Positions 12,738 to 40,158 of a DNA stretch of 64,000 bases are shown here, piece after piece. The notes below the pieces were generated by a model that searched no databases, had not been told where the DNA came from, and worked only from the letters and a program-made list of their open reading frames with translations. The DNA is taken from NCBI GenBank assembly GCA_965202585.1, contig OZ241828.1, forward strand, positions 50,654,001 to 50,718,000, given 5' to 3'. Numbering within the stretch: position 1 is the first letter of the stretch; the number at the start of each line of letters is the position of its first letter. A program made the translations under genes and the position numbers. This stretch comes from Thalia democratica. Lineage: Eukaryota.

Positions 12738-12807
12738 CGACAAAAAAAAGCGCTCAAAATATTTGGTCCTATGACCTGGTGCACGAGGAACCTTTCGGTT
12801 ATTGAGC
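12738..12807 (-). repeat. Short structured interspersed repeat (SINE-tail-like); other copies at ~29931-30040, ~37607-37676, ~58255-58300, ~60841-60900, ~61078-61110
   Basis: Shared core GATAACCGAAAGGTTCCTCGTGCACCAGGTCCTAGGACCAAATATTTTGAGCGCTTTTTT, found in both orientations in the window. Confidence 0.65.
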
Positions 12808-12820
12808 ATATCACTAAGGG

Positions 12821-13477
12821 GAACGGGTCAAATATGCACGAGGACACTTTTGCACGAAAGATCAAATATTCACAAAGGGGCGCTTTTGCACGAAGATATT
12901 TTTGCACGAAGACATTTTGCACGAAGGGTCACTTTTACACGAGGGGCCACTTTTGCACGAAAGATCATTTTTCACGACAGTAAAAAAATAAAAAAATATA
13001 TAAAAAATGTTAAAAAAAGCAACATAATAAGAAGATTAGTTAATAAAAAAAAGTTACCGACCGAGGGTAAGGGTTAGGGGTAACAGTGATAGTAAAAATA
13101 GATATAAAATATAAAAATAACAAAAAAAATATTTAGAAAAAAGTATAAAAAAAATTTAAATAAAAAATAAAAACAGTTATCGACCGAGGGTAAGGGGTAA
13201 CAGTATGAAAAAAAAAACCTAAGAAATGTTATCAAAAAAAAAAGACAAAAAAACTACCGACCGACGGTAAGGGTTAAGGGTAACAGTGATAGTATTAAAA
13301 AATGTAATTAAAACTAAAGTTAAAAAATAAATTAATAACTTTTAAATTTTAAATGAGTGCAACAATGTTTTTGTTCAAAAGTGTCTTTGTGCAAAAGTGA
13401 ACCTTCGTGCAAAATTGACGCCGTGCAAAAGTGCCTTCGTGCAAAAGCGTTTTTGTGCATATTTGACCCTTCGTGCA
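12821..13477. mobile_element. Foldback/MITE-like element with subterminal repeat arrays (copy 1)
   Basis: Inverted termini GGGTCAAATATGCAC (12825-12839) / GTGCATATTTGACCC (13455-13469). Left array of TTTTGCACGAAG units, inverted CTTCGTGCAAAA units on the right. Three central direct repeats CGACCGAGGGTAAGGGTTAGGGGTAACAG. No TSD found. Confidence 0.7.
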
Positions 13478-14140
13478 TCATTAGACTTCTAGCCATCACT
13501 AAAATCTTAAGATACCTCATAATGCAAAGTATAAATAGAAAATGGTAAACCTGTTGGTAGCCTAACTAAAAGTAATTTGGAAAGTGTTTAAAAATATTTA
13601 GGGCCTTTTAATATTAATTTTTATTAAAAAACCTGTTATGTTTTAAACAAAGTCAAATGTTATTTTTAAAGTTCATGAATTAAGCAAATTCTAAATTTAG
13701 TACAAAATTTTTTACTATCTAAGAAAGAAAAGAGAACACCAATAAAAAACTTAAGTGTGTTATAAATAAAAAAACAACATATTCAAAAAATATACTAGTG
13801 TATTTAGTGGTATGGTAATGAATTACAAATACATTCATAAACAGTTTAGTTTTAGAAAATAATTAAACTTATTTTCTTATCGTAATTTTTAATAATATAA
13901 ATTTACGTGTTTAGGAGAGTTTATTTTACTTAAAAGGGATTATAAGCTTATGTAGCCACAGAAAATACTCTTAACTTTGATTATTAATGATATGCATGAT
14001 AGTTAAAAGTATTTTTTATTTAGGTTATTCACATTTTTTACCAAAAAAATTGAACGCAATTTTAAAGAAAATATGTAACCTTGTAAAATTCTAAATATGA
14101 TTTTCATTTGATTGCAAAAAAAATCTTAGATATCTAATCT

Positions 14141-15308
<1,168 letters not shown>

Positions 15309-15410
15309 GTTGTTACTAACTTTTACTTGACAATTTAGAGCTAAATTATAAACTTGAATTTTGTTTTAATTCTTCTCTTATATAGTACATTTTATTCATT
15401 GTCTTCTGGC

Positions 15411-15525
15411 GTAAACATTGACAAGTGGCAAGAATTGCGTTAAATTTGTACACGTGTAATGTACAACGTTTCGTTAAACAAACATCTTAAAGAAAAGAAG
15501 AACTTTTCACGTGGCTGTGACGTGA
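15411..15525 (-). promoter_or_regulatory. ARF-like gene upstream motif cluster (identical at 40261-40375)
   Basis: GTAAACA (forkhead-like) at 15411, CACGTG at 15451 and 15508 (the latter in CACGTGGC), TGACGTGA at 15518. These lie 100-220 bp upstream of the ATG. Confidence 0.5.
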
Positions 15526-16039
15526 TTTTTCATCGTAAAATATAAAAATCTAAATTTTTAAGTAATTACTTAATATTTTTTAAACTTGCATAAGTATATT
15601 TAGCTAAGACACTTCTTTAAAACTATATTGATTTTATCAAAAATTTAGAATATCTAAGTAACGTCTACAAAAAACCGCCGCTTTTATGTATAAGTTATAT
15701 AAGAAAGAACATGCTTTATAGTATTTTGGAGCTTTTAAAATTGAAATGATAAGTTGTGACAAGCTTGGGAAAGTTTCAGAATAAAGTTAAAATACGCAGT
15801 TTTTTATTAGATACTCACAAAAAATAAATAAATAATTCAATACTTAAACTTAAATAAACATTTTTTTCATATAATAAATATCAAAAAAAAAACTGTTATG
15901 CAATATTTGTGTGATGTAGCTTCGAACAATTTAAAATTGCTAATATAGTTCATTAACTTTCGGCAAGAAATAACTACGTTTGGATACAAAATTTTTGTAT
16001 AATGAACAATGAAGTATATAATAAGCTACAAAATAAAAA

Positions 16040-19000
16040 ATTAAAAAGTTGTTTACTAACAATTACTAGGAATTTTTCAAAAATTCTTTTACCTAATACA
16101 TTTACAGCTTTTAAATATATCAATTTCTAGTTCTCCTTTGCAGCTGTAGAAACATTTTTATATGAAATTAAGTAAAAATATCAATACAATTTTTACTAGT
16201 TAGTTTTATTTAGTTCTCGTAATGATTTATTCCAATCATTAGTTTTGTTGTTTATGCTTATAAAATATTTTTTGTTGTCAGGAAGTTCACTTAAAATAAG
16301 GAAAAATATGTATAAAAAAAGTATAAAAAATAAAAAAAATGTTTTTTAATAAAAACATACGGAAATTGAATTTTTTGCCAACTTTAAGTTTTAAGATTTA
16401 TTCAAAACCACTTCATTTTTGATAAAAGGATAATTATATTTAAATGAGTTTTTATTTAAACCAAAACTGATCAGTACAAAATTATGTTTTATATACCATT
16501 ATTCGGTGATTAATAAATTTGATGTAACAACTTGTACAAACCAATTAGAAAAACTGTTTAGTAATTGTTTTAAATCACTCTCTAAAAATAAATAAAAACT
16601 GTACTTTTTCGAGTAATCTAAATATAAATTTTCAGCTAATTTTGTTTCGACAATTAGGTTTTTATTTATTATAAGTATATTTCTTTTTTACGCATTACAT
16701 AAAGCAAATGTAAAAATTATAGTGCAACTGTTTCATGTAATGTATAAGTTTTACACAGAGTAATAATTAAAATACAATAAAGCTAATATTTTACGTTACT
16801 GATTCTCAGCTATTAAAATTAAAAAAATAAAACTTGAAGTATATATAGTAGAAGTAAACTAGTTACACAAAACTAAAAACATTATATTGCATATTTGTTG
16901 AATTGTCTAAACACTTTTATTCAAAAATTCAAGTTTGCTTCCGTCTAACACGAAAATCTACAAAACTTCAATAAGTGACTCTAAAATTTGTTGAATTCTA
17001 AAAGTATTTTTTCAATTTGTTAAAAACAAGTAAATAAGTAACTTCACCGTATTATTACCATTAGCTATTGGTTATACTCTTTTTATTCTTTTCCAAGGTA
17101 TTTTGGAGTCATTTTTTTGCGCTTTAAACTGTAAAAATCCTTCTAAAGCCCAGTTTCACTTTTATACATGCAGCGTTCAAAATAGTTTTAAAATGGTTTG
17201 TTTATCTGAAATTAACCTGAGTTGATAAAAATGCTAAAAATGTAATTTTTTGTCTAAAGGTCGTATTCAATTGTGGTCAAACGTGTAAACATAGCTTTCG
17301 TAACGAAACTGCCCTCTTTCAAAAAATACTTGCTGCTACGACCGCAATTTCAATGACTTTGAGCGTTTTGTTTATTGAGGTGATGTGTAAATTTGCAATA
17401 AGCTAAGTTCCATAATATGCCCAAATTTTTTTTTGTTAGCAGGTAGTCTTTATTTAAATAGTTTTCAATTAAAAATAAGTTTTTAGTTGAAATTTGTCAA
17501 AGATAAACGTTTATTACTTACTTATAGTTTTATAAACAGGTGTTTAAAATCTTTTATTATAAGTTTTAAAATTTAAATTTTTTTTAGTTTAAACATATTT
17601 ATGTTATTAAGTAAACTTTGTACTACAAACTGTTTCAAGGCTGAATAGTTGTAAATAGCTATAAGAATTGAAGATTAATTAATTAAGATTAAAGAAAAAT
17701 TGTTTACTAAAAATTACTAGGCATTTTTCAAAAATTCTTTTACCTAATACATTTACAGCTTTTAAATATATCAATTTCTAGTTCTCCTTTTACAGCTGTA
17801 GAAACATTTTTATGTGAAATTAAGTAAAACATCAATACAATTGTTACTAGTTAGTTTTATTTAGTTCTCGTAATGATTTATTCCAATCATTAGTTTTGTT
17901 GTTTATGCTTATAAAATATTTTTTGTTGTCAGGAAGTTCACTTAAAATAAGGAAAAATATGTATAAAAAAAGTATAAAAAATAAAAAAAATGTTTTTTAA
18001 TAAAAACATACGGAAATTGAATTTTTTGCCAACTTTAAGTTTTAAGATTTATTCAAAACTACTTCATTTTTGATAAAAGGATAATTATATTTAAATGAGT
18101 TTTTATTTAAACCAAAACTGATCAGTACAAAATTATTTTTTATATACCATTATTCGGTGATTAATAAATTTGATGTAACAATTTGTACAAACCAATTAGA
18201 AAAACTGTTTAGTAATTGTTTTAAATCACTCTCTAAAAATAAATAAAAACTGTACTTTTTCGAGTAATCTAAATATAAATTTTCAGCTAATTTTGTTTCG
18301 ACAATTAGGTTTTTATTTATTATAAGTATATTTCTTTTTTACGCATTACATAAAGCAAATGTAAAAATTATAGTGCAACTGTTTCATGTAATGTATAAGT
18401 TTTACACAGAGTAATAATTAAAATACAATAAAGCTAATATTTTACGTTACTGATCCTCAGCTATTAAAATTAAAAAAATAAAACTTGAAGTATATATAGT
18501 AGAAGTAAACTAGTTACACAAAACTAAAAACATTACATTGCATATTTGTTGAATTGTCTAAACATTTTTATTCAAAAATTCAAGTTTGCTTCCGTCTAAC
18601 AAGAAAATCTACAAAACTTCAATAAGTGACTCTAAAATTTGTTGAATTCTAAAAGTATTTTTTCAATTTGTTAAAAACAAGTAAATAAGTAACTTCACCG
18701 TATTATTACCATTAGCTATTGGTTATACTCTTTTTATTCTTTTCCAAGGTATTTTGGAGTCATTTTTTTGCGCTTTAAACTGTAAAAATCCTTCTAAAGC
18801 CCAGTTTCACTTTTATACATGCAGCGTTCAAAATAGTTTTAAAATGGTTTGTTTATCTGAAATTAACCTGAGTTGATAAAAATGCTAAAAATGTAATTTT
18901 TTGTCTAAAGGTCGTATTCAATTGTGGTCAAACGTGTAAACATAGCTTTCGTAACGAAACTGCCCTCTTTCAAAAAATACTTGCTGCTACGACCGCAATT

Positions 19001-19148
19001 TCAATGACTTTGAGCGTTTTGTTTATTGAGGTGATGTGTAAATTTGCAATAAGCTAAGTTCCATAATATGCCCAAATTTTTTTTTGTTAGCGGGTAGTCT
19101 TTATTTAAATAGTTTTCAATTAAAAATAAGTTTTTAGCTGAAATTTGT
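16040..19148 (+). repeat. Recent local duplication within copy 1 (A-C-A arrangement)
   Basis: 16040-17497 is near-identical to 17700-19148. The spacer 17498-17680 is a copy of 20661-20840. The corresponding part of copy 2 is single-copy. Confidence 0.9.
17033..17457 (+). other. Candidate exons of an unannotated membrane-protein gene (also at ~18683-19108; disrupted at ~41885-42258)
   Basis: Open frame 17033-17195 (FTVLLPLAIGYTLFILFQGILESFFC..KM), donor GTTTGT, AG-bounded 120-nt exon 17260-17379 (VVFNCGQTCKHSFRNETALFQKILAATTAISMTLSVLFIE), then a tiny terminal exon. Introns are ~60 bp. No start codon found. Confidence 0.3.
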
Positions 19149-20309
19149 TTTAACTGAGAACTTTAAAGTTAAGAAAAGCTAAGTTTTAAAAAACTATGAT
19201 AAAAAAAGTATAATTTTTTGAATGATCATTTAATACTTGAGTTTGTTTATATATAACTACAGTTTTTCTATGTCTTGAAAAAAAATAATTTCTTAACAAA
19301 ATTTAAATTTAAATCATACTTGAAACAATTGCTTAAGAGAAACTTTTTAACAGTCCCAAAAAGCTAAATTAGTACTTAAGCATGAAATTAACGTGGTGTA
19401 GGTTTGAAATAAGTCATTAAATAATTTCTATAACTGTCAGGTATAGTTATTTTAAGCTTAGCTTTAAAATTAATTAATATAGTAACATTGTTTTCAACAA
19501 GTAAAGAGCTTATTACTATGTCTAAAAGTATGTAACACTGTAGATTTATAAATGCTTGATCATTTGCTTAGAGTTTTTAGATTTTCAGATACTTTTTTGC
19601 TATAAATTAAGTGTCAACTTTTTTAATATCATATATGTATTATTTATATGTATATATGTTTGGCTTTTATTTATAGATATTAATATTTTGTTTTATTATT
19701 ACTTTATCTCTTTTCAATTAATTGGTAATAGATCCATCCATTTAAAATAAATTTAGATCCAGTCGAATTCTGATATTAGCAAAAATAGACGTATTTGTGA
19801 TCCGGTAGTCCACTAGTTTTGATCTATTTATCTATTAATATTTACTTTGCAATGTCTTAGAACATTGAATGGTACAACAATAATAAAAAAACAACAATAG
19901 AAATAAACTTTAACGAATAAACAATTCTTCAAGTTACTAAGTCGCTTTGAAATTTGTTTTTGTAAACCATTATTTTTAACTTATAACTTTTAATGTTCAC
20001 TTTTTAGTATTGTGTTCATTGTTTTTGAAATAATTTTTGACATAGTAGGATTACTAAAATAATCTTATACAGTACAAAACATATTTAATATTTTACAATT
20101 TAGTCTGTAGTCAGCAAATTTTTTTTTGTTAACTACTAAAGATATAACTAGTGTTTTCATCGATTACTTAACCGAAAAAAAGTAAAACATTAGAAAAATT
20201 TATGTTTAACGGTAAAAAATTAAATAAAATTGTACATATACAATTATACTAACTTAAAAAAGTAACCAGCTGTAAAAGTGAATAAAATAATAAATTAAAG
20301 GTATAGATT

Positions 20310-20660
20310 AAGGATTGGCAACGTGCTGGCTGTGGGCTGGATCTTGTCCGCCAATAGATACTTCTGACCTGCGAAATGTTTTTTATCTTAAAGCATCTTT
20401 TTTATACCAAAAAAATTCGAGCTTTTTTATTAAATACAATTTGATGTGTGCTCTTGATTTGATTTCTAGTAGGCAGTAGAGTTTATTAAAGCCGTTTTTT
20501 ATTGCATCTTAAGTTAAAAAAAAATTTTGTTTAAATTTTATTATCTTATTTTTACAATTAAGCGATTTACAAAAAAATATTTTAACAAAGTCCGGAACAA
20601 AAAAAACTTTAGTTGGTAAATCTGGTCCGTCGACTAAGGAAGTTTCTCACAAGTTTAGAC
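20310..20660. mobile_element. Degenerate hAT (Charlie/MER58-like) MITE remnants; a further end fragment at 23866-23900; both also in copy 2
   Basis: GGATTGGCAACGTGCTGGCTGTGGGCTGGATC and CAGGGGTCGGCAAAC..GCGGGCCGCA resemble hAT-Charlie type termini. No TSD found. Confidence 0.35.
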
Positions 20661-21079
20661 CAAAGATAAACGTTTATTACTTACTTATAGTTTTATAAAC
20701 AGGTGTTTAAAATATTTTTTTATAAGTTTAAAAATTTTTTTTTTTTTTAGTTTAAATATATTTATGTTATTAAGTAAACTTTGTACTACAAACTGTTTCA
20801 AGGCTGAATAGTTGTAAATAGTTATAATAATTGAAGATTAAATTATTAAAAATACCAAACATGAATTATCAATTAACTTGCTAGTTGCTGAAATCAAACA
20901 TCTAGTTGCTGGTTGTTTAGCAACTATATCAGAAATATAGGTAAACATGTTTATTATAAACATTAAAAAGTATCAATGTATCTTACTAAACACAACTTAC
21001 TAATATTTGTTTTAGTTCACCATTTTGATAAGTTAATAATTGAAAAAAAAACCTATAAAGTTTTTCTACAGTTTAAGTG

Positions 21080-21960
21080 TAACACTATTCCAAGTTTCAC
21101 TTGAAAACCGTTTTGTTTTTAAGAGAAAATTAAAAGTTATTGCATTTAAATTCTTGCCCGGGCAAAGTATGATGGAACAAAAAGTGAGAAAGAGAATAAA
21201 GAGAATGAGAGCGCATTTCTCTTTTAAGGCGTGTTATAAAAACTGCATGATGCAACGATTTATTTTAATGTTTTTGGTCACAAGCTGATAAGGTTATACG
21301 ATAGACTGAGCTGTGTTGACAGAACCGCCAGGAGCTGCAGAGACTGTTTACAAGAAAGACACTTGAATATTGGTATTGAGTTGTTTTATATTGTTTTAGT
21401 ATATATATTTATAATTGTATTTGTTAGATTTAAAGATTGTTATTTAAAGAAAGTTTTGTAATTCTCTTACTGTACACTTTATAGCTCTTCTGATTTTTAA
21501 CAAGTGATTTATTAAAAGCATTTTTACAGTGGTTTAATATAAAGCATTTTTCACATAAGTGACATACTTTTATAGTTCTTGTAGTTTTCAACACTTGGTT
21601 TTGCATTTAATTTTAAGTATTTTTAAAAATATTATTTAATTTTTTATAGTGGTTAACTTACAGTATTTTTGTACACATATTACATATATAATAATTCTTG
21701 TTATTTTAACAATGGATTTTGTGTTCATTGAAGTTCGTTTAACAGAGAAACTCACTCAATTGTTGTGCCTGGTTATTTATAGTAGTATTGATATCTAGTA
21801 ATACTTAGTCTAGGGTAAAGTTATAACTATGTCAAATCCCAATAGTAAAGTAACACTCAGATTAAGCCCTAAGCGTAAGCGTTCTAGGGGTAATGAACCT
21901 TTGGATGTCACCAACACCCAATCGTTTCAAAAGAATTATAAATTTTCTTTCATTTGTTGT
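21080..21960 (+). mobile_element. Copy-1-specific ~0.9 kb segment, probable retroelement fragments
   Basis: Absent at the matching copy-2 position (~47525-47555). Contains an ATG-started basic peptide MSNPNSKVTLRLSPKRKRSRG at 21829. Confidence 0.35.
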
Positions 21961-22531
21961 GCCTAAACAATAGTTTTGAAATGAATTTTATCTTAAAAAT
22001 CATAGAAATTAAACAGATCCAGTATTTAATTACATTGCAAAACTTTAACTAATACTGTTTTTAATTAATTGTAAACTTTCCATAAAATTATTACAAACAC
22101 AAACTATTTTTACGTTTAATTTTATTCAACTTAGTTTTTTAATAACATTCTAACTCAGGGTTCTATGCTTGGTAATTTAGGTTATAATTTTCAAAAATAC
22201 ATCAATATTTTTTACATTATTTTATCAGTTAAGTAACATTTTAACTTTAGTGTTTACGTTTTCTCACCTTTAAGTTTGTTAAAACAAAGTAGCTAATATT
22301 TAGCTTTTGTCATAAGTATAGTTTTTTTTTTAAATATAAATGCGAAGTATTTGAAAATTTTTAATTAGAATCTTTTTAATGTGTAGACAGTAGATCTAGT
22401 TATAGTTTACAGATAGATCGAGAACGGTTTTTATATTTACAACCTTTTAGAGGTTTTAAGTAAATACTTTTTAATGTACAGCGTTTTGCTAGTAGTCTTT
22501 AAATAAATCCTGTATTAATTTATTTATCAGT

Positions 22532-23638
22532 ATGTTGGACATCGACGTAAAAATTTTATTATTTTCGCTAAATGGTAATAATGATAATAACACTACTTTG
22601 GTTAAAAAAAAACATTGTTTCGAACAAATAATAACAACCGCTAGTTGACGCATTTTTGCCATGTAGAATTAACTACCGATCACACCGGGTTTCATGCTTT
22701 AATCAGCATTTTACATCATGCAATCATGTCTTGACCAGGTGATGTTATGTAACAAAGACGTATATAAACGGACGAGCGAATGAGAAAGCAGATCATTTGG
22801 ATTTTAACGTTAACATGAAGCATCACTACGCCATTTTCCAGTCCGAAGCGTAAGTCGCCATCTTGGAAAAGCTAGCTGAACTCCCGGAAAACCTTCTCTT
22901 GGCGCTCTGAGTATAAGTCGCCATCTTTCAAAAGTTAGATGATTTCCGGCAAAACATTCTTATTCAAGTATTTGTTTGTTTGTCTGAAATATTAACTTTG
23001 TACTTAACTTCATAAGTTCGTAGTTTTTATATCTTGTTCTATATACATTTTGTCTACCTACTTTAGCAACGTCGACGGGGCGTACAACTTGATTTGAGTT
23101 GTTAACGTGCTTACTCATAAGCCTAGGCATATTGCAGCAGACAAGCAACAACAACTTCCAGTTTGGATCAATTTAAACATTGAACTCCACGCATAAGCCC
23201 ACGCATTCGGTGGCATAAACTTATTACTTTATTTCTAATATCTATTTATCTTGCATGCTCTACATCCGGTGTCAACGAGGAAGTATAAGTCCTTACTTTC
23301 TGAACCAGTAAACTGTACGAGCAACCATCTGTTACAGCCAAAGTAGAATTTTGAACTGCAAGAAGCCGTCTTAAGTAATAAGTTTTCTTAACAGGTCTTT
23401 GTTTGTATTGTATAATAAAGCATATAGATACTTGTTAGTCTATATTTAAACTTAAACTTCAAGTAAAATAAATAGGGTATTTGCTCTTACACACTCTTGC
23501 ACTCGGTCGCAGACCGAGGTAGCAACTAAAGATAAAGATGGCCCCGAAGCTACTGCTAATCTGGCTCCTGTCGAAACTGCCGAACCTTTTACAGAGGCGG
23601 TTTCACATGAAGCTAGAGACCCAAGTAGCCCGGAGTTC
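22532..23638 (+). mobile_element. Copy-1-specific ~1.1 kb LTR-like insertion upstream of FMO copy 1
   Basis: Copy 2 reads TTATCAAGTATACATTAGTC (~48112) without it. The insert starts TGTTG and has TATATAAA (22761), three CGCCATYTT motifs, AATAAA, a hairpin CTCGGTC-GCA-GACCGAG and a truncated protein-like frame. No second LTR or PBS found. Confidence 0.5.
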
Positions 23639-24146
23639 ATCAAGTACACGTTAGTCTATTTTTACGCATAGTTGATTTGCATGAAAAAACATTTTTAGTT
23701 ATTATAGCTTTGTTTACGTACTTTAAAACAAAACAAGCTTTTATTTTTGTTAAAAAAGTTTGAAAAGCGTAATTGAATGATGCAGTTCGGACTTTATGAT
23801 ATGAAAAATACTTTGTAAGTGTTAAATACGTGATTTAAACAAGTTGAACCATCATAATGCTAAACCAGGGGTCGGCAAACTGAGTCCTGCGGGCCGCAAC
23901 AAACCTTTCTATTTGAAGTGTATACTAAATAATAACATCTTTAAAAGTTAAACTAAGTTGTTAAAATTTTATACGCATTCAATCCTCTAAGCCGTTTTTT
24001 ATTCTAGCTTTAAACTTAACTTAGATATTATTAAGAAGATAAATTAAGTGAGTATCATAAGCAACTAAAACCGTAACATGCACTGACTTAAATAAAACTT
24101 TAACTACCAAAGTAAAATATGTGAAATTTCAGAAATTATTTTAAGT

Positions 24147-25502
24147 ATGACAAAAAAAGTGTGCATTATTGGCGCCGGACCTTCGGGCATGGCCCTGATC
24201 GGAAACTTGAAGAAAATAAGCACGGAGCAAGGAGTGGAGCTGAAAGTGACTTGCTACGAAAAACAGGAGGAAGTCGGGGGACTGTGGAACTTCACTTGGA
24301 GGACGGGAACGGACAAGTACGGAGAAAACGTGCACGGCTCCATGTACCAGGACCTGTTCAGCAACGGGCCCAAGGAGTGCCTCGAAATTCCGGAGTACAC
24401 CTTCGAGCGGCACTTCGGCAAGGAGATCCCGTCTTTCCCGCCTCGGCGTGTGCTGAAGGATTACTTGAGAGGATACTGGAAGTTTTTGGGAGTCGACGAA
24501 GAAGCCGACGTGCTGAAGAGCCACTGTGTTAGGCAGGTGAACTACCGGGATGACAAGTTCACCGTGAAAGTCGCAAACTTGCCGGAAGATTCGGAGTTCG
24601 AGGAAACGTTCGACTACCTGGTCGTGGCGACGGGGCATTTTTCAGTTCCAAACGTGCCTCAAATTACCGGCATGAGCAACTTTCCCGGGCGAATTTTGCA
24701 CTCCCACGATTTCAGGAGCGCCAAAGAGTTCACCGGAAAGGACGTGCTGGTTGTGGGAGCGAGTTACAGCGCTGAGGACATCGGGCTTCAGTGCTACAAG
24801 TTTGGCGCCAAAAGCGTCACCACTTCCTACAGGACCAAGCCGATGGGTTTCAATTGGCCGGATACCGTCGTGGAACGGCCTTTGGTTACTAAAATTGAGG
24901 GAAAAACTTGTTTGTTCAAGGACGGCTACAAAAAAGACGTGGACGCGATAATAATGTGCACGGGGTACAAGCACCACTTTCCTTTTATGCCCAAGGAACT
25001 GAGGTTGAACACAACAAACATTTACAACCTGCCAAACTTGTACCGAAACTTACAGTGGTATGCAACTGATAACGGTCAGAAGGATTGCAACGGCAGGCTT
25101 TTTTACGCGGGTATGCAGGATGAGTTCTACACGTTTACCATGTTCTCATTGCAAGCCATGTGGGTATCGAATGTAGTTTGCGGTAAAATAAAAGTTCCGG
25201 TTGCAGCCGAGTGCAAGGAAGAAATTAAGAAATGGCTCGATTCTAACAAGGACTTGACGGATTATTTCATGGAAATTGATTCGCAGACTAAATATTTGCA
25301 GCGGCTGGCAACGGATATCAAGTATGAAAAAGACTTGGACGTTGCTGACATGTTCATTCAATTGCTACATGATAAGGCGAAAGATATTCTGACATACAGG
25401 GACAAGTCGTTTGTTTCAAAGTTTTCTGGTAACAAAGCTCCCGCTCAAAAAGCCCCATGGATCAAAAGCTTTGATGACAGCATCAAAAACTACATTCAAT
25501 GA
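24147..25502 (+). CDS. Bacterial-type flavin-containing monooxygenase (trimethylamine monooxygenase/mFMO-like), copy 1, intronless, 451 aa
   Basis: Motifs GAGPSG, GGLWNFTWRTG, SNGPKECLE, ATGHFS, FPGRILHSHDF (FMO signature), GASYSAEDIG, CTGY, GMQD and C-terminal PW..DDS. No C-terminal membrane anchor. Confidence 0.93.
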   Translation: MTKKVCIIGAGPSGMALIGNLKKISTEQGVELKVTCYEKQEEVGGLWNFTWRTGTDKYGENVHGSMYQDLFSNGPKECLEIPEYTFERHFGKEIPSFPPRRVLKDYLRGYWKFLGVDEEADVLKSHCVRQVNYRDDKFTVKVANLPEDSEFEETFDYLVVATGHFSVPNVPQITGMSNFPGRILHSHDFRSAKEFTGKDVLVVGASYSAEDIGLQCYKFGAKSVTTSYRTKPMGFNWPDTVVERPLVTKIEGKTCLFKDGYKKDVDAIIMCTGYKHHFPFMPKELRLNTTNIYNLPNLYRNLQWYATDNGQKDCNGRLFYAGMQDEFYTFTMFSLQAMWVSNVVCGKIKVPVAAECKEEIKKWLDSNKDLTDYFMEIDSQTKYLQRLATDIKYEKDLDVADMFIQLLHDKAKDILTYRDKSFVSKFSGNKAPAQKAPWIKSFDDSIKNYIQ

Positions 25503-26614
25503 AAAAAAGCTTAAAACTTAACTTGTTATGTAAATATAAAATCATTTGCATAAACAAATGTTTTTTATTTAAATTTTCACCATAGTTTGCTCTTAGAATT
25601 AATTTACCATGTTAAAAGTTTTATCTTTAATGTTGCTTTAACTTAGTACCTGTTTGTTGTTCCCAACAAACCATACCTAATTATCTGTATATGTATACTC
25701 TGTGCTTTGAATATTAAAAGTTGTTTTATGCTACTTATGAGTCACTATTTATAATTTTTTATATGAACGAGTTTTGTTTATGTGCAAAATAAAAGGATTC
25801 AGTTTATTTTTTGATTTATTTACATGCAACTTTTGTTTTTCTATAATACAGAAGTTTTACCTAAAAAATTTAATTGTTTGTACAAAAAATTTAGTGTTGT
25901 TAGAAGCTTATAATTGCTTTTACTTCTAATTATTTACATGTCAAACAAAACTCATTAAAAAACTAATTTAAATAATAGCTAGTACAAAAATTAGTTTTAC
26001 TTAAGTCGTAGCAGAGTTTCCCAAATTTCAAGACTAAAAATGTTCAATACTGAAAAAATAGTTTTTTGTTTTAATATTAAATGTTAAATTAAGTAGAAAT
26101 GTGACGACTTTCTGATATAAATCTAACAACTTAAGTTGTATTGTTGTTAAAAAACTATAAGTAAATTGCCACAATTACTCGAATCGAGTATGACATTAAG
26201 TTAAAACAAACAAACCTTAATCAGAGCTTTTATTTTTAGAATTCTGGTTGTAAGCAGGGGCGTTGCGTTGGAGCAGATGCTCTATCTAAAAATAAATAAC
26301 AAATTATTATAATATTTTTTATTTGTTAAAATGTAATTTTTAAATGTTTATCATTAAAAGGGGTTTTTCTTAACTGAAATACAACAACGAAAATACCTAA
26401 CTTTATTTTAATTTATTTAATAATGCAATGAAAATTAAAATTTAATTGTACAAGTAAACATTCTGTGTGTTTTCTTAACAAGTAGAAATAAGTAATTAGC
26501 GCTAAAAATATTCTAAGCATTAACACCAAAACTTGCGTTCAAACTATTTAGTATTTCAAGCTTAGCTAGATTTTAAAATTATACTATATATTAGATACAT
26601 CGTATGATGCAGAC

Positions 26615-27682
26615 CAGTAGCGTAGCGTGGTATTTTGGTCAGGGGGTGCGCAAATTTTTTTCTCAAAAAATCCTCTAAATTAAAACTTTTGTAATTAGCT
26701 ATAAAAAAACTTTTTATAAGTAATATAATTGAAAATAATTTATTAAGTAAAATAACTTCGTTAACTGTTTTAAAAAATATTTGTATATTACAAAATTAAA
26801 CAATTAAATAAAAGTATAAATTTCATTAGAATTACTTATACTTGCACAAATGTAAACTTACTAAATAAAAATTGTTTTTATTACTTACAGTAAACTTTAT
26901 ATCTTTAAAATTTAATATATTCAATAAAACGAAAGTATCTGTTTTTTTTACGAAAAAATATCAATCTCTTTAATATACATTACAACAGTGATAAAAACAC
27001 CTCATTGCACATAATCTTAATAAAGTTACACAGAAGTTAAAATAGACCAACTTTATAACTGTTATTACAGTTTATTAAAACTTTGTAAAATAGTTAAAAG
27101 TATACTTTTTAAATTCAATTTATTTGATTGCATTTGTTTAAAATAAAAATCACAAACAAAGTTTATTTCTCATAGGCCGATACGCTTTTTCTTGTATGTT
27201 TACAAAAATAAAGTTCAGAAAACTAGCAGTAGTCTTAACAATGTAGCTTAAAAAAAAATTGTAAAATTGTTTAATTTTTCTTTAAGCGTGACGTAATTTT
27301 TATAAACTTTTTTTAGAAAAATAATCTGCCATAAGGTTATACTACAGCGGTGCGCTATATTAATTGCGTGCTTTTTGAGTCTAAATTCTTATGAAGTTAA
27401 TGAACTTATAAAATTTTTCCTTATGGAGTTTTTCATCAACATCGGTGCGCATTTCAATTACGCACCGAATCAGTATATTGAGTAATAACATATACTTTCC
27501 TAACTTGTCACTAATTGGTATTCAAAATTTCGTTTAACTTTTTGAATACTAGATAAACATAGTTGAAAAAAGGCAGAAAAAATAAACTATAAAGGATAAA
27601 GATATTACATTCTTTTTTTTTACATTTTTCTTTTTTTGGGTGGCACGCATGCGCCAGTGTCCCTCCCCACGCTACGCCACTG
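26615..27682. mobile_element. Non-autonomous hAT element (1068 bp)
   Basis: 16-bp TIRs CAGTAGCGTAGCGTGG / CCACGCTACGCCACTG (1 mismatch). 8-bp TSD ATGCAGAC at 26607-26614 and 27683-27690. Absent from copy 2. Confidence 0.9.
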
Positions 27683-27690
27683 ATGCAGAC

Positions 27691-29930
27691 CAATATAAAA
27701 GAATTTATCTTACTGAAAGATCTAGACCTAAGATTCACTATGCAATAATGTTTCTCACTTTGAAAATGATTTGTTCAACTATGTAAAAATATAAAATTTA
27801 AAAAGCAAAATTCAGTTTTTCAAAGTAAGCTTAAACATTCTATAAAAAGTATTAAACAAAAAGAAAAAGTAATAGTTAAAGCTGACAAAACTGATAATCT
27901 TTACTCAATGGATGTGGATAACTACAAAAAATTATTATTTGAAACTTTTACTTCAAAATACAAAAAAGCTACAACCGAAATTGTCAACAATATCAACGCT
28001 GAGGCAGAACTTTTAATCTCTAAGAATAAAATAAAAAGTAAAATTAGAAATATAAGTAATTAAAATGCTTTTATCACACTTAAGGATCATAAAGAAAAAT
28101 TTCTATACAAAAAATCATGTAGATTAATAAATACATGCAAGTCTAGTTTAGGAATAATAATAAGAAAATACTGGAAAACATTCTGCCTGTAATAAGATCT
28201 AAAACAGGACTGCTACAGTTGAAAAACTAATTTGAAGTTTTTGGATGGTTTAATAACATCAAAAATAAGAATCTATTCATTTTCATGAAACTGGTTGTTA
28301 TGGATTTTTATCCTAAGATTTCCAAAGAGCTCTTAATAATTGTTATTCAATTTGCAGGAAAATATATTGATGTTATTAATGACCAAGTTGAAATCATACT
28401 TCACTCAAGTAAAACCATTCTATTTTTCGATAATGAGTGCTGGATAAAAAAGAACTCTGCACATGATCTTTTTGATATATCAATGGGAAGTTTTTTTGAG
28501 CAGAGGTTTGTGAATTGGTAGGATTATTTATCTTAAGTGAGCTAATAAATAATAAAAAAATGGACAAATCTAATTGTGGCCTTTAGCGAGTTGACAGTTT
28601 GCTCATAGTTAAAAAACGATCACCAAGATTTATTGATCAAATGAGGAAATCTATAACGAAAGCGTTTCAGCAACATAACTTAAAAGTGATAATTGAACTA
28701 AGCACACAAATGGTGGACTTTTTAGACATAACTATGGACCTGGAGAAGGACGAATATCTTCCATTTAGTAAAGAGAATGCTAAGAATATATATATGAACT
28801 TCAACTCAAATCATCCATACTCATCAATATTTGACAAGATATAAGATCCTTATGAAAAGACTTTAAAAAAAAGTGGTTTTAAAGCAACACTATCATATGT
28901 TCAAAATAGTTTTATCGGAAAAATTAGAAGAAATTTAAGGAAAAAGAAAGTTTTTTACTACAATGCTCCTTTCAGTAATTGTATAAAAACGAATATAGGG
29001 AAAGAATTTCTAAAATTAGTATCTAATTGGGCCTCTATAGTTCTATATTTCATAGAAATACAATAAAGATTTCAGATTCCTGTATGTCTAACTTGGAAAA
29101 AGAATTGTCCAATTACAACCAGAAATTACTTCAAAACTCAAACGAAACAACTTTAGAAAACATCAAATTTTGCAATTGTAGATCAAAAGCTAATTGTCCA
29201 GTTAACGGTGAATGTCTTACTAAAGAAGTCATTTATAAGGCAACAGTTATGCATAAAAACAAGGAAAATATTTACATTGGTTCAACTGGAAGACAATTCA
29301 AAAGTAGATATTATGAACATACTCAATCCTTTAGAAATGCAAAAAAGAAAGAAAGTACAAGATTAAGTAGATTTATTCACAAAATCAAAATGGCAATGTT
29401 GATTGGAGAAAAATAATAAAATGGGAGATTATTCATCGTAGTAACCAAAATAGACCTAGTAAACTTTGCACCCTCTGCAATTTGGAGAGACTGAAATTGC
29501 ATTTGCAGACAACAACATACTTTTGAACTTAAGATCAGAATTGGTAGGAAAATGTAGACATTTTACAAAGTTTTCTTTGAAATCTTGATTTACTAAATTT
29601 AAGTTTAATTAACCTACCTTTGTTTGCTTTATGTAATTTTGTTTTTTATATTGTCTTTTTTTTTTCTTGTTATTATTGTATTTTACGTTAATGATAATCT
29701 ATTTTGCTGAAAATTACTTAAATTTGATTAATTAACTAAATACCTAATCAACTAATTACTCATCTCTAACTGTATAAAGTGTTTGTCTATTGCAACTTGT
29801 TGGTTTGTTTACTTGTGATCATCGCTTTAGCGTGAAACAATTGTTAAGTAATAAACTCAATATAACTTTTGTCTTAATTGTAAATTTTATAAATATTCAA
29901 ATATTTTTGATTATATATATAGTTTATTGA
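27691..29930 (+). mobile_element. Decayed Penelope-like retroelement (RT + GIY-YIG endonuclease)
   Basis: Broken frames encode VIVKADKTDNLY, DFYPKISKELL, FDISMGSF..AEVCELVGLFIL, VDFLDITMDL, YMNFNSNHP, CNCRSKANCPVNGECL and IYIGSTGRQFKSRYYEH. Many stops and frameshifts. Absent from copy 2. Confidence 0.9.
29809..29851 (+). ncRNA. Minimal type I hammerhead ribozyme fold in the Penelope 3' region
   Basis: TTACTT-GTGATCA-T-CGC TTTA GCG-T-GAAAC AATT GT-T-AAGTAA. Stem I TTACTT/AAGTAA, core G3 U4 G5 A6 U7 C8 A9, stem II CGC/GCG, GAAA, palindromic stem III ACAATTGT, cleavage triplet GUU. Confidence 0.7.
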
Positions 29931-30778
29931 AAAAAAAAAAGATACTCAAAATGTTTGGTCCTAGGACCTGGTGCACGAACAGCCTTTCGGTTATCGAAGT
30001 CGCACACCACGGATACCTTTTAACGTCTTGTCCAGGACTATACCCTAACAAAAATGCGTAGGCTTTGTTTTTATTACAAAAATGTTTCGAGGCTTATTAG
30101 TTTTATCTTTTGTGAACTTAAATAAAATAAAACAAATAAATTACAACATTTTATTAAAATATTATATTACCCATCACATCAGAGTTGCATAGTTTGTAGT
30201 CTGTATTTTTTTTTGCTCTTTGCACTCAGAATTTTGTGCATCTCCTCTCAAAAAGTTAAGCGTAATAAACTAATATATTTGAATCTCTAAATTTGAGATA
30301 GTTTTATTTCTAACGCCCTTAAATCTAAAACATGCTAATTTGTGGCGACCTCTCATCAAAAAATGGCAACTACTATATAAAAATTACCTAAAAAAACCAT
30401 AGAACGAAGAAGTAACTTCTTTTCGTTTTAGTAGCTAATTATAATTACTTAAAAACTTTTTTTTGTCTATTAAATAAATATGAAGAGATATCTTTTATCT
30501 AATTTTTATTCATTATCTATAAAATGTAGTTACAAGTTTGGCATAAGAATATCTCAAATTATGCTACTTCTAAAATTTTAACAAGAAACAATAAAAAACC
30601 ACAAGTGAAATTAAAAAATATTTTTTTAAATATGATAATAACAAAAAACTTTATATAAACAGAAAAATATTCAAAACTTGTGGTGTTAAAAAACAGTACT
30701 TCAATTACATTAAGTTTTTTAAGTTTCTAAGTTTTATAATTAGTAAATGCTTTTAGTGTTGTATAATTTTTTTCTTCA

Positions 30779-32250
30779 TCAAAGTAGTAGCTTTTTTTTT
30801 GTTAAACAAAAGAACAAACATACTTTTAACACACTAAAGAGGTGAGAAAGAATAGAACAAAAATAATCATAAAAACACTTAGAAGGCGACAAAATCAGTT
30901 TAACTGGTTTAACCACCTGGCTGCGCAGCTGAGACGAAGCCAGACTGTATATCAAAGGGTCCAGGCACTCGCTGGAACTGACGCAGAGGTACGATATTAT
31001 TCCGAACCAGTAGTCCAGCATTTTGTCACTGGCTTTCGACTCGGAAATGTTGGAAATTATCGTCCACAGTAGGTAGGCTACAAATGGGACGTAACCCGCG
31101 GCAAACGTGGCTATGATGGCCGTCAGCTGCTTGTATATTCGCCTGTATCGCTTCACCACGAAGAAGTCGTTTAAAAGGCGGAAATTTGAAATTTTAGCTT
31201 AAAATTAATTAATGTTTTTTGTTGCTGAAAGTTTAATTAATATGTTAATCTACACGTTTCTTAAAATGTTTTCTAAAATTTTTTTTTTAGGTTTGTAATT
31301 AAATCTTAAATTTTTTACAGTATGTTATGATAACTTAATTAATCTATAAAACAATCTTTTAAACAAAAGCAGAATATGTAAATATATGTGTAGATGCTAA
31401 GTATTGTTTTATGATTAGCTTTTTTCACAGTTCATTAATGCAATTCATTGTTGTAGAGCTAATTATTTTGTATGAAAAACTTTTTTTTTCCGAAATTGTT
31501 TACAATTGTTTCAGTGCGATTTGTACCAATTGTCAAAACAGCTTTTATAATAAAAGTATACGTGCATATAAAGATACAAATAAAACAGTACAGTTTTAAT
31601 TATTAATTTTATATAAACTTTTTCTGTTCGGAGAGCGCCACATAAATGAGTGAGGACAGTACTGCAATGATTATTAGAGGTACTACAAACATAATAGAGT
31701 AAGCGACAACTGCGTATAAAAAATACCCCATAACAAAATCGTCCATTACAGAGCAAGTTGGCCACGGTGACTCTGTATCAGAATAAAATAAAACTAAAAT
31801 ATATTTTCTTCTTTTTAAAGCAATCTATATTAAACTTAATGTTAACCGTGAACAATTGTTATTGTTTTTATTTGCAAACAAAAATTATTCAAAACCTTAA
31901 AACTCGTTGTCTTAAATATTTTATTTTGCAAGTAGTTTAAAACCTGCTTTTTAAAAAGTAAAAATAATGTTTTGCATGTTCAACTTTAAAGAAGGTTAGA
32001 TCAACATTAGTTATGAGTTTTAGACTAACGCTGGTCATTATGACTTCTAACACCGCAAAGTAAACACAACGGAGCACTTGCAGCCAATGACAGAGACCAG
32101 ATAATAATCACATAAAAAGTATTTCTTTTCTTGAGACGTCATTTATGGCAAAGGGTTTTTTGACTGCCAGATATCTCAGGTATGCGTACAGCATGATGTG
32201 CAGTGAAGTAGAATAGCTAGTAGTGAAATCCATCAACCAGCAGAACTTGC
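30779..32250 (-). pseudogene. Rhodopsin-class GPCR, copy 1, truncated and disabled
   Basis: Exon 1 and promoter are absent (cut by the junction at ~32410). Exon 2 is 221 nt vs 222 nt in copy 2 (-1 in an A-run at ~32114-32120). An ~80-bp deletion at 31184/31185 removes the exon 4 acceptor. Confidence 0.85.
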
Positions 32251-32673
32251 CTTAAAATCATCTTTATACCACTTAAACACGTATTAATTTTTGAAAAAAT
32301 ATGTAGTTTAAGAAAGAACTTGTGTGTATTTGTTTTAATTGTAGCATTGAAAGAAAAATTTTTGTAAACATAGTTTATTTAATAAAAGTAATATATAAAT
32401 AATAAATTTCATTTTATATCGTAGTTAGAATCAATAGCATCACTTATAAAGTGAATTATAAAATATTTTTAACTTTTTGTTTACTTAAAAAAATTTTAGG
32501 AATTTTTCAAATTTATTGATATACCTTATTTTGTTTCTTGTTATTCTTGTGCAACTCAAGTTTAAAAAAATTAATAATAATTAATATGCTCACTAATATC
32601 TACGAATCTTCATAGTATCTCAAATACAATGAGTTTAGTATTTTTACAGAGTATTTAATTGTATAAAGTTGAA

Positions 32674-35598
32674 ATGTTACCGAGTAAAAACTTCAATGAT
32701 AACAGTTTCTACCTGGCAAACTTTACAGTGCCGTCTTTTACACCTAAACCACAAGAGGCAAACAACAAGATGTAGCCTTCAGGTTTACAAAATATATATC
32801 AGCAACACATGAATGCACAATACAATGGGCAACCCAACCTTGCCTACAATGTGCAAGGCATGTACATACCCAGATCTTCAAAACAGTACGTAGGAGTCCA
32901 GAACAACATTTATATCCAGCAAAATCAGAACCAACAGAACCAAAGGGGATTACATCTAGGTTACCAAAGCAGAAATAAAAATGCTAACTATACCCAAAAC
33001 ATGAGCAAAAACTTTCAAGGTACTCAAGGTTTACAAGATTACTACAAAGCGCAAGCTACTCCACTATTGAGAAATACCAACCAAAAAAGATATCAAAACC
33101 AACAAATGAATGTTGCGCGTCAAATGAATCAACCAATAGACGAGCAACACATGTTTAATACATTAATGCAGAACGTGAACACGCGAAAACGTTTGATTGA
33201 AATGTACCGGGAACTGATGGAACAGCAGCACAACACAATGCAAGCTCAAAACAATGTTCAAACTGCACAACTGGTTGACATACAAAATTCGCAGAAAAAC
33301 CAATTCCAAGTTCAGCAAGTATTAAATCCTCCTAATCCTAAGACTAACAATGTGGTTCCTTTCGAACAAAGCGTAGATTCAATGGGAGGAACAACATATT
33401 TTCATCTATTCTACCAGATCAAAGAAAAGATCGGTGAAGGCGGTCAAGGATCTGTATACTCGGGTAAGCAAAGGTTGTATTAACATTCAGATTTATGAAA
33501 AAAACATTTTATTAGTTATTTTTGTATTTAAACACCGTACATAAATTTTTTTTATTAATGTTTTTTAAAATATTTTAAATAAAGTTTGAAATTTTTTTTT
33601 TAATTAATTTCTTAAAACTAAATAAACACTTTTTCTTTCTAAAAATATGCATAAAAACTAAACTTCATAAAAAATGTTTTGAAAACGACTCTATCTTAAT
33701 TGAAGTTTAAAATTTAAACAGGTGTTTGTTTATACGATTCTCAAGACATTGCGATAAAAATTATAAGTTTGGATAAAAACTCTTTTTACCATCGACTACA
33801 AGGGTAAGAATCTTCCATATGAATTAGCTATGCATCTAGCTGCTTGTGAATCTGAAAAAAACAAAAACTTGGGATCTACTGGTATGTTTTTCCTTTTATT
33901 TTTTTTATAGTTGTTAGCCTTAGTATTTAATTTAAAAAGCTAAAAAAAAAATAACACAAAAAGTTTTTTCAATTTATTCAATTTTTTAATTTTTTTTTTG
34001 CTTAACTTCTATTTAATGTTAACATACAATGCTTTTTAAGTAATAAATGCGTTTCATAGTTTATTACACTAATATGTGCCATAGTAAAACTTTTAAATGT
34101 TTTGTTAACATGTATTTTTGACAACTAGTAATTTACAACGATTGAATTGTTATTAGAATTTTTTTTAAACTAAAAATCAAATGTTTAAACACTTATAATT
34201 GAGCCTTGTATAACGTACTTAAAAGTATTGGTATCTTAGGTATAATAAAAATATTCGATTGGTTTATGTTTTCCAAATGTTGTGTAATAGTAATGGAAAA
34301 ACCAAAAAACTATGAAGAACTCGCAAAATATATGACTAAAAACGGATCATTATCAGAAGAATCAGCAAAAACAGTTTTTATACAGGTAGTACTTTTTATA
34401 AGTTTATAGAATAAATTACAATAAATACTTAAAAATATTTTTCGTTAACCTGATTTTGGAACTTGCCAATTAAGTAGTATACACATGTTTAATCTTAAAC
34501 ATCAATACAAAAAAGTATTTTGTACTGGACTATAACTGTTTATGTGTTAAATATAGAAGAGGAAAGTGTTTTACTTAGTTTTGTATCAAAATTTTTTAAA
34601 GAGTATAGAATTATTTCTTAACTCTATTTTGAGAAATTTCTTAGCTACTTTTATTAAACAGTTTTGCATTACTTTAGTAGAAAATAATATTAAACACAAA
34701 TACTAACGTTTTAAATAAGTCTTTATTTGTCATTGTATTTTTGCCGTTTTTTAACTTCCTAAGAAAACTACAAATATAATTTAATAAAAAGTAGAATTAT
34801 AAGACGGTATATATTACTACAAACAGCTTTGGAATATTATGCAAAATCTCCATAACAGTTCAATAGCACACAAAGACATAAAAGCTGAAAATATACTTTT
34901 CAACCCAGTTACTAATGAAATCAAGTTGTTCGATTTTGGCTGTGCAACTTTTAATTCGGTTAGTTTAAATCGAAGTATTAGTATGAAAAATTGATTATCC
35001 AATGATGGTGTATGGATTGAAATAAATGTGTTACCTTTTTAAAAGTCTTCTTGCTGAATAATAACAAAATACTATCGATAGAAAAATGCTAATAAATTTT
35101 AACCTGATTAAATTTTAAGTAAAATTCATATGATTTCTAGTTACTTTACTTGGAAGAATTTTATCGAATGGCAAATTGTTTGAATTATTCGCAAAAAACC
35201 TTTGAAGTAATTCATTTGTTTCTTTCTGTTAAAAGTTTAAAACCGTTGTAACAGTTTCTACTATTTTTTTAATAGAAAGATATTTAACCGTAGTATCAGG
35301 TACCGAAAACTGCTATCCCCCTGAGTTTTTCACTGGAAATATAACTACTGGGGAAGACCTGGACAGATGGTGCATTGCTTTGGTATTGTACACCATTATT
35401 GAATGTAGTATTGCGTTTAAAACTCCTCAAGAAATTGTTTTCAATGATCTACCTTTGTCAAATGGTCATTCACCAGCATATTTGGATTTGATAACCAGCT
35501 TGTTGCACAAAAATCCTCAACGTAGGCTAAATTATGAGGAATTGAGTGTTCACCCTTGGATTTTAAGTTATGACACACTTTTGACAAAGTTTTCTTGA
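32674..35598 (+). pseudogene. Pim-like kinase copy 2, disabled
   Basis: CAG>TAG at codon 34 (32773-32775). A +1 insertion in exon 2 (TCTTTTTACC vs TCTTTATTC) gives TAA at 33805-33807. A -1 deletion at the start of exon 5 gives AAA GAT ATT TAA at ~35276-35287. The two frameshifts are in T-runs, so sequencing error is possible for them. Confidence 0.8.
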
Positions 35599-37690: not shown

Positions 37691-38296
37691 CGGGTCAAAT
37701 ATGCACGAGGACACTTTTGCACGAAGGATCAAATATTCACAAAGGGGCGCTTTTGCACGAAGGGTCACTTTTACACAAGAGGCCATTTTTGCACGATGAA
37801 TCATTTTTGCACGAGAGTAGAAAATAAACAAAATAAAATAAAAATGTTAAAAAAAACAACGAAATAAGTAGATAAATTAAAAAAAAAAGTTACCGATCGT
37901 GGGTATGGGTTAGGGGTAACAGTGATAGAAAAAATAAGTAAAATTAAAAAAAAATAACAAAAAAACGCATTTAGAAAAAAAAAAGTTTAAATAAAAAATA
38001 AAAACAGTTATCGACCAAGGGTAAGGGTTAGGGTAACAGTGATGAAAAAAAAAACCTAAGAAATATTATCAAAAAAAAAAGACTAAAAAACTACCGACCG
38101 ACGGTAAGGGTTAAGGGTAACAGTGATAGTATAAAAAATGTAATAAAAGCTAAAGTTAAAAAATTAATTAAAAACTTTTAATTTTTCAACCCGTGCAACA
38201 ATGTCTTTGTGCAAAAGTGACCCTTCATCAAAATTGACGCCGTGCAAAAGTGCCTTCGTGTAAAAGCGTTTTTGTGCATATTTGACCCTTCGTGCA
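37691..38296. mobile_element. Foldback/MITE-like element (copy 2)
   Basis: Same structure as 12821-13477 with a shorter left array, so insertion predates the segmental duplication. Confidence 0.7.

Positions 38297-38963: not shown

Positions 38964-40158
<1,195 letters not shown>

Follow-up and report, generated by a model that had tools for sequence, protein, structure and literature searches.

The stretch analysed here (the window) comprises 64,000 nucleotides from the tunicate Thalia democratica (GenBank assembly GCA_965202585.1, contig OZ241828.1, positions 50,654,001 to 50,718,000 of the forward strand) and lies at 50.65 Mb of the chromosome-scale scaffold C4 of an 801.8 Mb assembly. It carries two intact copies, called A and B, of a gene encoding a flavin-containing monooxygenase (FMO) that resembles the bacterial trimethylamine monooxygenases (Tmm/mFMO). 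The first-pass annotation, which flagged the open reading frame (ORF) of copy A, had considered it a candidate for a bacterial gene acquired by horizontal transfer. The reading that we consider likely is instead that of a nuclear tunicate tandem gene pair encoding a soluble FAD- and NADPH-dependent enzyme of the Tmm/mFMO subtype, within a five-locus family that belongs to a Tmm-like clade of marine animals. The two copies and the repeat units that contain them are as follows.

24147..25502, plus strand: Tmm-like FMO copy A (the flagged ORF), 451 residues, ATG to stop, intact, with Pfam, NCBIfam and PDB matches
48642..49997, plus strand: Tmm-like FMO copy B (the twin), 451 residues, intact ORF, scoring 583.1 bits against NCBIfam
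7532..32393, no strand: tandem repeat unit 1 (ARF, Tmm-like copy A, seven-transmembrane (7TM) exon), from self-BLAST
32408..53460, no strand: tandem repeat unit 2 (ARF, Tmm-like copy B, 7TM exons), from self-BLAST

Copies A and B differ at 32 nucleotides and 12 residues (97% identity), and the proteins of the window are absent from the public protein collection. The 451-residue ORF exists as annotated with every motif quoted for it, and the sequences GAGPSG, FPGRILHSHDF and GASYSAED of the copy A translation all fall in invariant alignment columns. Copy A matched the Pfam FMO-like family PF00743 with 122 bits (cut-off 22) and the NCBIfam trimethylamine monooxygenase profile NF058570 with an E value of 1e-170, residues 4-451 aligning full length and colinearly with profile positions 1-442 of 443. 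The NF058570 scores of copies A and B (568.7 and 583.1 bits) are both below the curated cut-off of 675; the other tunicate paralogues gave 483-569 bits, other animals 514-692 bits and 25 evenly drawn bacterial Tmm proteins 770-857 bits. PDB entries for Tmm/mFMO enzymes matched copy A end to end, with E values from 5e-136 (7D4K, Pelagibacter Tmm) to 1e-122 and 48-50% identity to the solved Tmm-type structures. An insect FMO structure gave only 2e-53, and ancestral mammalian FMOs matched residues 1-227 only (E 1e-20 to 1e-27), in keeping with the earlier assignment to the Tmm/mFMO pattern rather than to animal FMO1-5. The product is a full-length class B flavin monooxygenase of the Tmm/mFMO type, not of the FMO1-5 type, an assignment to family that chance could not give, and is predicted to be soluble.

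Compared with the bacterial enzymes (Pelagibacter HTCC7211 Tmm, 7D4K; Roseovarius RnTmm, 5IPY and 5GSN; Methylophaga mFMO, 2VQ7; NF058570), the tunicate proteins have the same length, are colinear throughout, retain the GAGPSG FAD motif together with FxGxxxHxxxF, GxSYSAED and CTGY, and likewise have no membrane anchor. Twenty FAD and NADP+ ligands have been listed for the Pelagibacter enzyme Tmm7211, together with the gate residue Asp314 (PMC8498191). Most of these are kept: 15 of the 20 residues are identical in copy A and 16 in copy B (N73, R229, N291, D325, T329 and R418 among them), as is the D314 equivalent. The tunicate copies differ from the bacterial enzymes in their lower profile scores, in their position outside the bacterial clade, in certain cofactor-site residues (below) and in being encoded by a nuclear eukaryotic gene that is trans-spliced, as seen in an orthologue. 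The vertebrate FMO3 and FMO1-5 proteins, the makers of trimethylamine N-oxide (TMAO) in animals, belong to the same superfamily (PF00743) and would be expected to perform the same chemistry. However, they are of ~530 residues and are reported to be membrane bound (PMC10682829), whereas the 451-residue tunicate protein has no hydrophobic tail and ends in a polar one.

The two units, each of ~24.5 kb, are arranged head to tail with a junction of 14 nucleotides, and the window is without any N. Their flanks are 88-93% identical and the units also differ by kilobase-scale insertions and indels. The first-pass annotation had stated that the ORF was duplicated together with ARF and G-protein-coupled receptor genes, and both are present in each unit. 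The annotated neighbours are the following.

14144..14996, minus strand: ARF-family GTPase gene of unit 1, split by short introns into at least 3 exons, from open frames with GKT/PTIGFN, WDVGGQ and NKQD motifs
30779..31159, minus strand: last exon (TM6-TM7) of a rhodopsin-like 7TM gene of unit 1, twin of the unit 2 exon
51711..53304, minus strand: rhodopsin-like 7TM gene of unit 2, several exons (51711-52196 and further exons at 52677-53304)

The WDVGGQ exon of the ARF gene was found again near 39.5 kb, in unit 2, and the unit 2 7TM exon matched Pfam 7tm_1 with an E value of 1.1e-6 and 28.7 bits, slightly below the cut-off of 30.5. The mean GC content of the window is ~25%, that of the two 2-kb bins bearing the ORFs 40-41% and that of the ORF itself 48%. 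Contigs of a related species whose protein is 92% identical share the ~300 nucleotides of AT-rich sequence nearest the ATG, the sequence TTTCAG included, as well as the 3' flank. Contamination or an unlinked contig was ruled out by the position on a chromosome-scale scaffold, by the AT-rich flanks shared with the related-species contigs and by the flank-matching depth, so the earlier judgement that simple contamination is unlikely holds. In the two runs that covered the intergenic repeats the depth of the ORF contig was 137-149, versus 72-98 for the single-copy flank contigs (~1.5-2x), as expected of two collapsed copies. The ORF is integrated in host DNA and was duplicated with its neighbours. 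The flanks of copy A at 22800-24005 and 26552-26800 are very high-copy repeats, with summed contig depths of 10^4 to 4x10^5 versus ~100 for unique DNA. Unit 1 also contains a local direct duplication of 1.45 kb (16043-17497 and 17695-19148, 98.8% identity), which is younger than the 24.5-kb tandem.

The transcript features of the pair are the following.

24127..24132, plus strand: TTTCAG, 14 nt upstream of the copy A start codon, the trans-splice acceptor of this copy and conserved in the related-species contigs L008-L014
48622..48627, plus strand: TTTCAG acceptor of copy B, assigned by position
23967..24126, plus strand: block upstream of the acceptor common by alignment to copies A and B and the related-species locus, a putative outron or promoter
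25503..25851, plus strand: 3' untranslated region (UTR) of copy A with AATAAA at 25788-25793, from an RNA-library contig and the end of an orthologue contig

The annotation had noted that TTTCAG looked like an acceptor serving host RNA processing, and this is borne out in a close relative. Protein P0132, an orthologue in the 90% cluster and the product of a Tara-derived unigene, begins MG-FYLNK-KVFLS-M. The residues FYLNK correspond to bases 2-16 of the spliced leader in its sole open frame, and KVFLS-M matches the 15 nucleotides that follow the AG in genomic contig L010, together with the start codon. The leading MG presumably stems from the ATGGG end of the template-switch oligonucleotide. 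TTTCAG is a used trans-splice acceptor in this orthologue. The 16-nucleotide spliced leader sequence of Ciona has been confirmed (PMC1488885), and the exact Ciona leader followed by GT occurred 1048 times in the T. democratica genome versus 22 times for the reversed control. This count shows that the leader belongs to the genome and not the number of spliced-leader genes. Four dispersed leader loci inspected on scaffold C1 (L015-L018) had unrelated downstream sequence; at L017 the leader runs into a short UTR and then an ATG that begins an open frame, an arrangement that resembles a retroposed trans-spliced mRNA.

Evidence of expression came from several sources. An RNA-library contig from run X5 covers positions 24753-25840 with 3 mismatches, which corresponds to coding sequence plus 338 nt of 3' UTR and ends 47 nt past the AATAAA. 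Two orthologue contigs of mRNA length, L012 and L013, stop at the corresponding point, which for L012 is the position homologous to 25851. An oligo-dT library contains B-like contigs, and near-identical DNA and RNA are present in marine plankton metagenomes and metatranscriptomes, which suggests a pelagic species. Contigs alone cannot prove transcription, and in the sequencing runs examined no RNA contig covers the ATG; on the evidence together the ORF is expressed.

The genome gave six matches to the flagged protein: copies A and B, a 452-residue protein on scaffold C2 (69% identity), a 448-residue protein on C8 (51%), a gene at 51.9 Mb of C4 (51%) and a distant FMO (L006). There are five Tmm-like loci over three scaffolds, described as diverged paralogues with 30 to 69% identity, and at all loci a pyrimidine-rich AG lies 13-19 nt upstream of the ATG. 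The far C4 paralogue (L005), 1.2 Mb further along the scaffold, has a GT-AG intron of 386 nt in phase 1 inside the WRTGxD motif (between WRTG and xD), and removal of the intron gives a clean product of 456 residues. Within this intron (L005:1308-1345, ~51.897 Mb of C4) is a partial copy of the start of the gene's own exon 2, reading G-L-D-E-F-G-E-P in frame, which may be the remnant of an exon duplication or may serve as an alternative exon.

The ordinary FMO L006, of the 'FMO GS-OX-like' type, provides a control for the cues that had suggested a foreign gene. It is 30% identical to the flagged ORF, and its nearest named relatives are those of Ciona intestinalis (52%), Phallusia (51%) and Clavelina (46%), followed by molluscs and amphioxus. 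These relatives follow the species tree, and L006 was clearly inherited vertically; they and the Ciona leader both mark the host as a tunicate. Like the flagged gene, it is a single uninterrupted ORF of high GC content (0.49, and 0.62 at third codon positions, GC3) in AT-rich flanks (22% GC) with an AG acceptor shortly before the ATG. Moreover, L010, a third species' orthologue of the flagged ORF, has a GC3 of only 0.36. GC richness as a foreign signal was ruled out by these two comparisons, and because L006 shares both properties and the L010 GC3 is low, intronlessness and GC richness are uninformative on foreign origin in this genome. The claim that all host-type genes here have introns is therefore correct for the neighbours of the ORF but fails for L006. 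The GC3 of the gene is 0.75 in the related species, 0.64 here and 0.36 in the third species. Of the 18 polarised synonymous changes that postdate the duplication, 17 replaced G/C by A/T; the GC3 seems to be eroding toward the AT-rich background.

To place the family we used a maximum likelihood tree (IQ-TREE, 93 rows, LG+C20+F+G4 by posterior mean site frequencies). The 28 bacterial rows formed one clade (99/95), and the tunicate loci, the named animals and the rows from short contigs formed a second (57 rows, 100/99), the two being sisters (97/95). The second clade holds all 16 animal-labelled rows, one of which represents a cluster that includes a Mnemiopsis protein, and all five T. democratica loci, and within it the five tunicate loci share a 100/99 subclade with the ctenophores Bolinopsis and Mnemiopsis. 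When 23 Tmm proteins were added in an even draw from 401 Pseudomonadota genomes (disregarding row L118 of that tree, a wrong ORF of 182 residues), the bacteria remained on one side (SH-aLRT 98). Constraining the tunicates to group with the bacteria was rejected by the approximately unbiased (AU) test (p 1.65e-5, delta lnL 158.5), the grouping tested being the hypothesis of the first-pass annotation, with rows chosen after the tree had been inspected. A scan of 185,579 bacterial and archaeal species genomes, one per species, gave at least 598 relatives, the best of which was 51% identical and the top 80 all 46-51%.

Named animal homologues among the matches listed in two database searches were 43-56% identical, and cluster look-ups added more, including Tubulanus at 42%. 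They are from ctenophores (Bolinopsis, Mnemiopsis), jellyfish (Rhopilema, Sanderia), corals (Acropora, Desmophyllum), bivalves (Ruditapes, Mizuhopecten, Ylistrum), the nemertean Tubulanus and copepods (two species of Tigriopus, Eurytemora, Acartia), giving an overall range of 42-56%. Five of these (Bolinopsis microptera, Rhopilema esculentum, Ruditapes philippinarum, Ylistrum balloti and Tubulanus polymorphus) carry the RefSeq name 'trimethylamine monooxygenase-like', a phrase found in no paper of the literature searched; their proteins have the same size as the tunicate ones and fall in the same clade. No tunicate is among the named matches listed; T. democratica itself has five loci. These groupings argue that the gene is a member of the animal Tmm-like family and not a recent bacterial import. 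An ORF in a singleton contig of a Planctomycetota metagenome-assembled genome (L124; GCA_038528015.1, JBCBFD010000657.1, 1657 nt) also branches inside the animal clade, where it is the only row with a bacterial label. It has 68% GC in flanks of 40% GC, AATAAA downstream and no neighbouring gene, and the contig is probably mis-binned eukaryotic sequence. On a 22-kb metagenome contig (L126:8001-10842) a Tmm-like gene is followed by a second FMO-like fragment, and tandem duplication of the family may recur in other plankton genomes.

A number of observations weigh against our reading. Pairwise identity alone does not split the bacteria (49-53%) from the non-ctenophore animals (50-51%). The distribution is patchy: no ascidian was found in the best 120 matches of either Tmm-like query, though the database has ascidian proteins. 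The topology of the animal clade departs from the species tree, with tunicates beside ctenophores; this mismatch and the lack of an ascidian match agree with loss as well as with old paralogy or with transfer between eukaryotes. Most rows of the eukaryotic clade are from unlabelled contigs whose eukaryotic origin was deduced from contig size and context, the longer ones in or near the clade (such as L125, L126 and L129) being gene-poor, AT-rich or with LITAF or KH-domain neighbours. Attempts to root the Tmm family by the context of outgroups gave a mixed picture: P0244 lies in a bacterial ABC-transporter operon and others look eukaryotic. The spliced-leader evidence is the protein sequence of a related-species orthologue and not reads of T. 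democratica. Among the contigs of the 90% cluster and P0132 the leader signature is in P0132 only: L008-L011 and L014 are genomic-like, and the mRNA-length L012 and L013 follow the genomic sequence without a break across the acceptor, which shows that unspliced molecules exist as well. Finally, the equivalent of Trp70 (W in 51 of 51 bacteria) is F, C or Y in all tunicate copies and F in both A and B, Gln315 of Tmm7211 is replaced in copy A only (Q326E), and no published assay of any animal Tmm-like enzyme was found in the literature searched. Given the replaced Trp70, the copy A change and the lack of an assay in that literature, the substrate is a guess.

These points bear on the origin of the gene in different ways. 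Recent transfer from a bacterium to the tunicate, as the first-pass annotation had it, draws on an intronless ORF of 48% GC in a 25% GC genome, on best characterised relatives that are bacterial and on the lack of ascidians among the best matches listed. We consider it very improbable, since the AU test rejects it, the best bacterial identity is 51%, five diverged paralogues lie on three scaffolds with a spliceosomal intron in one, related-species orthologues share the flanks, the vertically inherited L006 is equally intronless and GC-rich, and the scores of 569-583 bits against the equivalog profile are far from the 770-857 of bacteria. The tunicate proteins neither nest in nor pair with any donor lineage that they resemble clearly more than they do other eukaryotes; their place is in a wide eukaryotic clade that includes ctenophores, cnidarians, bivalves, a nemertean and copepods. 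An ancient transfer, in which an early animal or eukaryote took one bacterial gene that was then patchily lost, fits the reading of the locus that we favour and differs from it on deep origin only. The animal clade is sister to bacterial Tmm rather than to other animal FMOs and the most basal outgroup, P0244, is that of the bacterial operon, and the mixed outgroup contexts leave room for a bacterial ancestor, far back in time, of the entire animal clade. A published FMO phylogeny found patchy taxonomic patterns and favoured duplication and loss, with horizontal transfer not excluded (PMC10682829). We nevertheless think such a transfer rather unlikely: reciprocal monophyly would equally fit transfer from eukaryotes to bacteria or an old shared family with losses, other outgroups look eukaryotic and no donor lineage stands out among bacteria that are all 46-51% identical. 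A very old transfer in either direction is indistinguishable here from an old shared family. That a pelagic tunicate lineage acquired the gene by transfer from a different marine animal or from a protist seems improbable. It would account for the 100/99 subclade shared with Bolinopsis and Mnemiopsis apart from bivalves, cnidarians and copepods, and for the absence of Ciona, Phallusia or Clavelina homologues from the top 120 of either query. However, the branching within that subclade is poorly resolved with open forks, the same pattern would arise from old paralogues that were lost differentially, ascidian orthologues may have diverged too far to reach the threshold of the matches listed, and fast-evolving tunicate proteins can be misplaced.

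The pair itself admits two further explanations, one of which is that A and B are two haplotypes of one locus misassembled in tandem. The Logan contigs over the ORF follow one path per run, only A-like in X1 and only B-like in X3. Tunicate heterozygosity can reach the 7-12% divergence seen in the flanks. Bubble popping by contig builders is expected to leave one path per run and accounts for this pattern, although the reads do not prove both copies in one individual. A true tandem is favoured by the head-to-tail junction, which has no gap, and by the structural differences that separate the units, and an excess of replacements in one copy would be odd for alleles; we regard the haplotype explanation as still less probable than transfer between eukaryotes. 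The other possibility is that copy A is a decaying or functionally shifted duplicate and copy B alone does the ancestral job. With two outgroups to polarise the changes, copy A had acquired 12 non-synonymous and 10 synonymous changes and copy B 1 and 8, an asymmetry of replacements with a binomial p of 0.0034. The changes in A strike positions conserved in bacteria, all kept in copy B: Q326E (Gln315 in Tmm7211, where it touches both FAD and NADP+; Q in 51 of 51 bacteria), W406L within E405Q-W406L-E407L (W likewise in 51 of 51) and H434Q (H in 49 of the 51). Yet the frame of A is intact, the derived states recur, with 3 mismatches, in an A-type RNA-library contig whose source was an independent sample of 2016, E stands at the Gln326 position in two named animals, and Fisher's test on the ratio of non-synonymous to synonymous changes gave only p 0.045. 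Both copies are under purifying selection (dN/dS 0.17 for A versus B and 0.07-0.09 versus the orthologue). Copy A is the fast-evolving twin, relaxed or shifting, and copy B the better candidate for the ancestral activity; full confinement of that activity to B is a tentative possibility, somewhat short of the one that we would choose.

Under the favoured reading of a nuclear tandem pair from an animal family, the gene would have been eukaryotic long before this tunicate lineage arose, with no recent uptake from bacteria. Its mRNA would mature by spliced-leader trans-splicing at TTTCAG, as in the close relative. By analogy with the solved Tmm enzymes, NADPH would reduce the FAD, and O2 would then give a C4a-hydroperoxyflavin shielded by NADP+. 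This would oxygenate a small soft nucleophile, most likely trimethylamine to TMAO or dimethylsulfide to dimethylsulfoxide (DMSO). Homology predicts, more broadly, that small amines or sulfides are N- or S-oxygenated in a reaction dependent on NADPH and FAD. After the tandem duplication copy B would have stayed under strong constraint while copy A took many replacements at conserved positions, and its activity may be altered or weakened. We infer substrate, physiological role and the meaning of the copy A changes from such comparisons.

What is new here is a tunicate member of an animal Tmm-like family that is already annotated and unstudied, together with the asymmetry of its tandem pair. The result removes a tempting false positive for gene transfer from bacteria to animals and shows that in this genome three cues (an intronless ORF, GC richness and bacterial best-characterised matches) are insufficient. 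Tmm-type monooxygenases form a family that is widespread in animals, has so far escaped characterisation and is transcribed in ocean plankton samples. Since these animal genes are transcribed in plankton, marine surveys that count tmm as bacterial can pick up animal transcripts, and one animal-type sequence is already filed under a Planctomycetota genome. The pair, one copy conservative and the other with changes in the active site, offers a ready test of the residues that set activity. An unlikely but far-reaching extension is that the Tmm family from ctenophores to pelagic tunicates descends from one very old bacterial exchange, that zooplankton oxidise trimethylamine and dimethylsulfide themselves and that the tunicate family is perhaps confined to pelagic forms and expanded in them. 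If true, zooplankton would supply TMAO and DMSO, whose production is at present ascribed to bacteria.

Beyond the repeat units, the window contains an inverted repeat of ~390 nt (58431-58824 and 58985-59371) with arms that are 90% identical.

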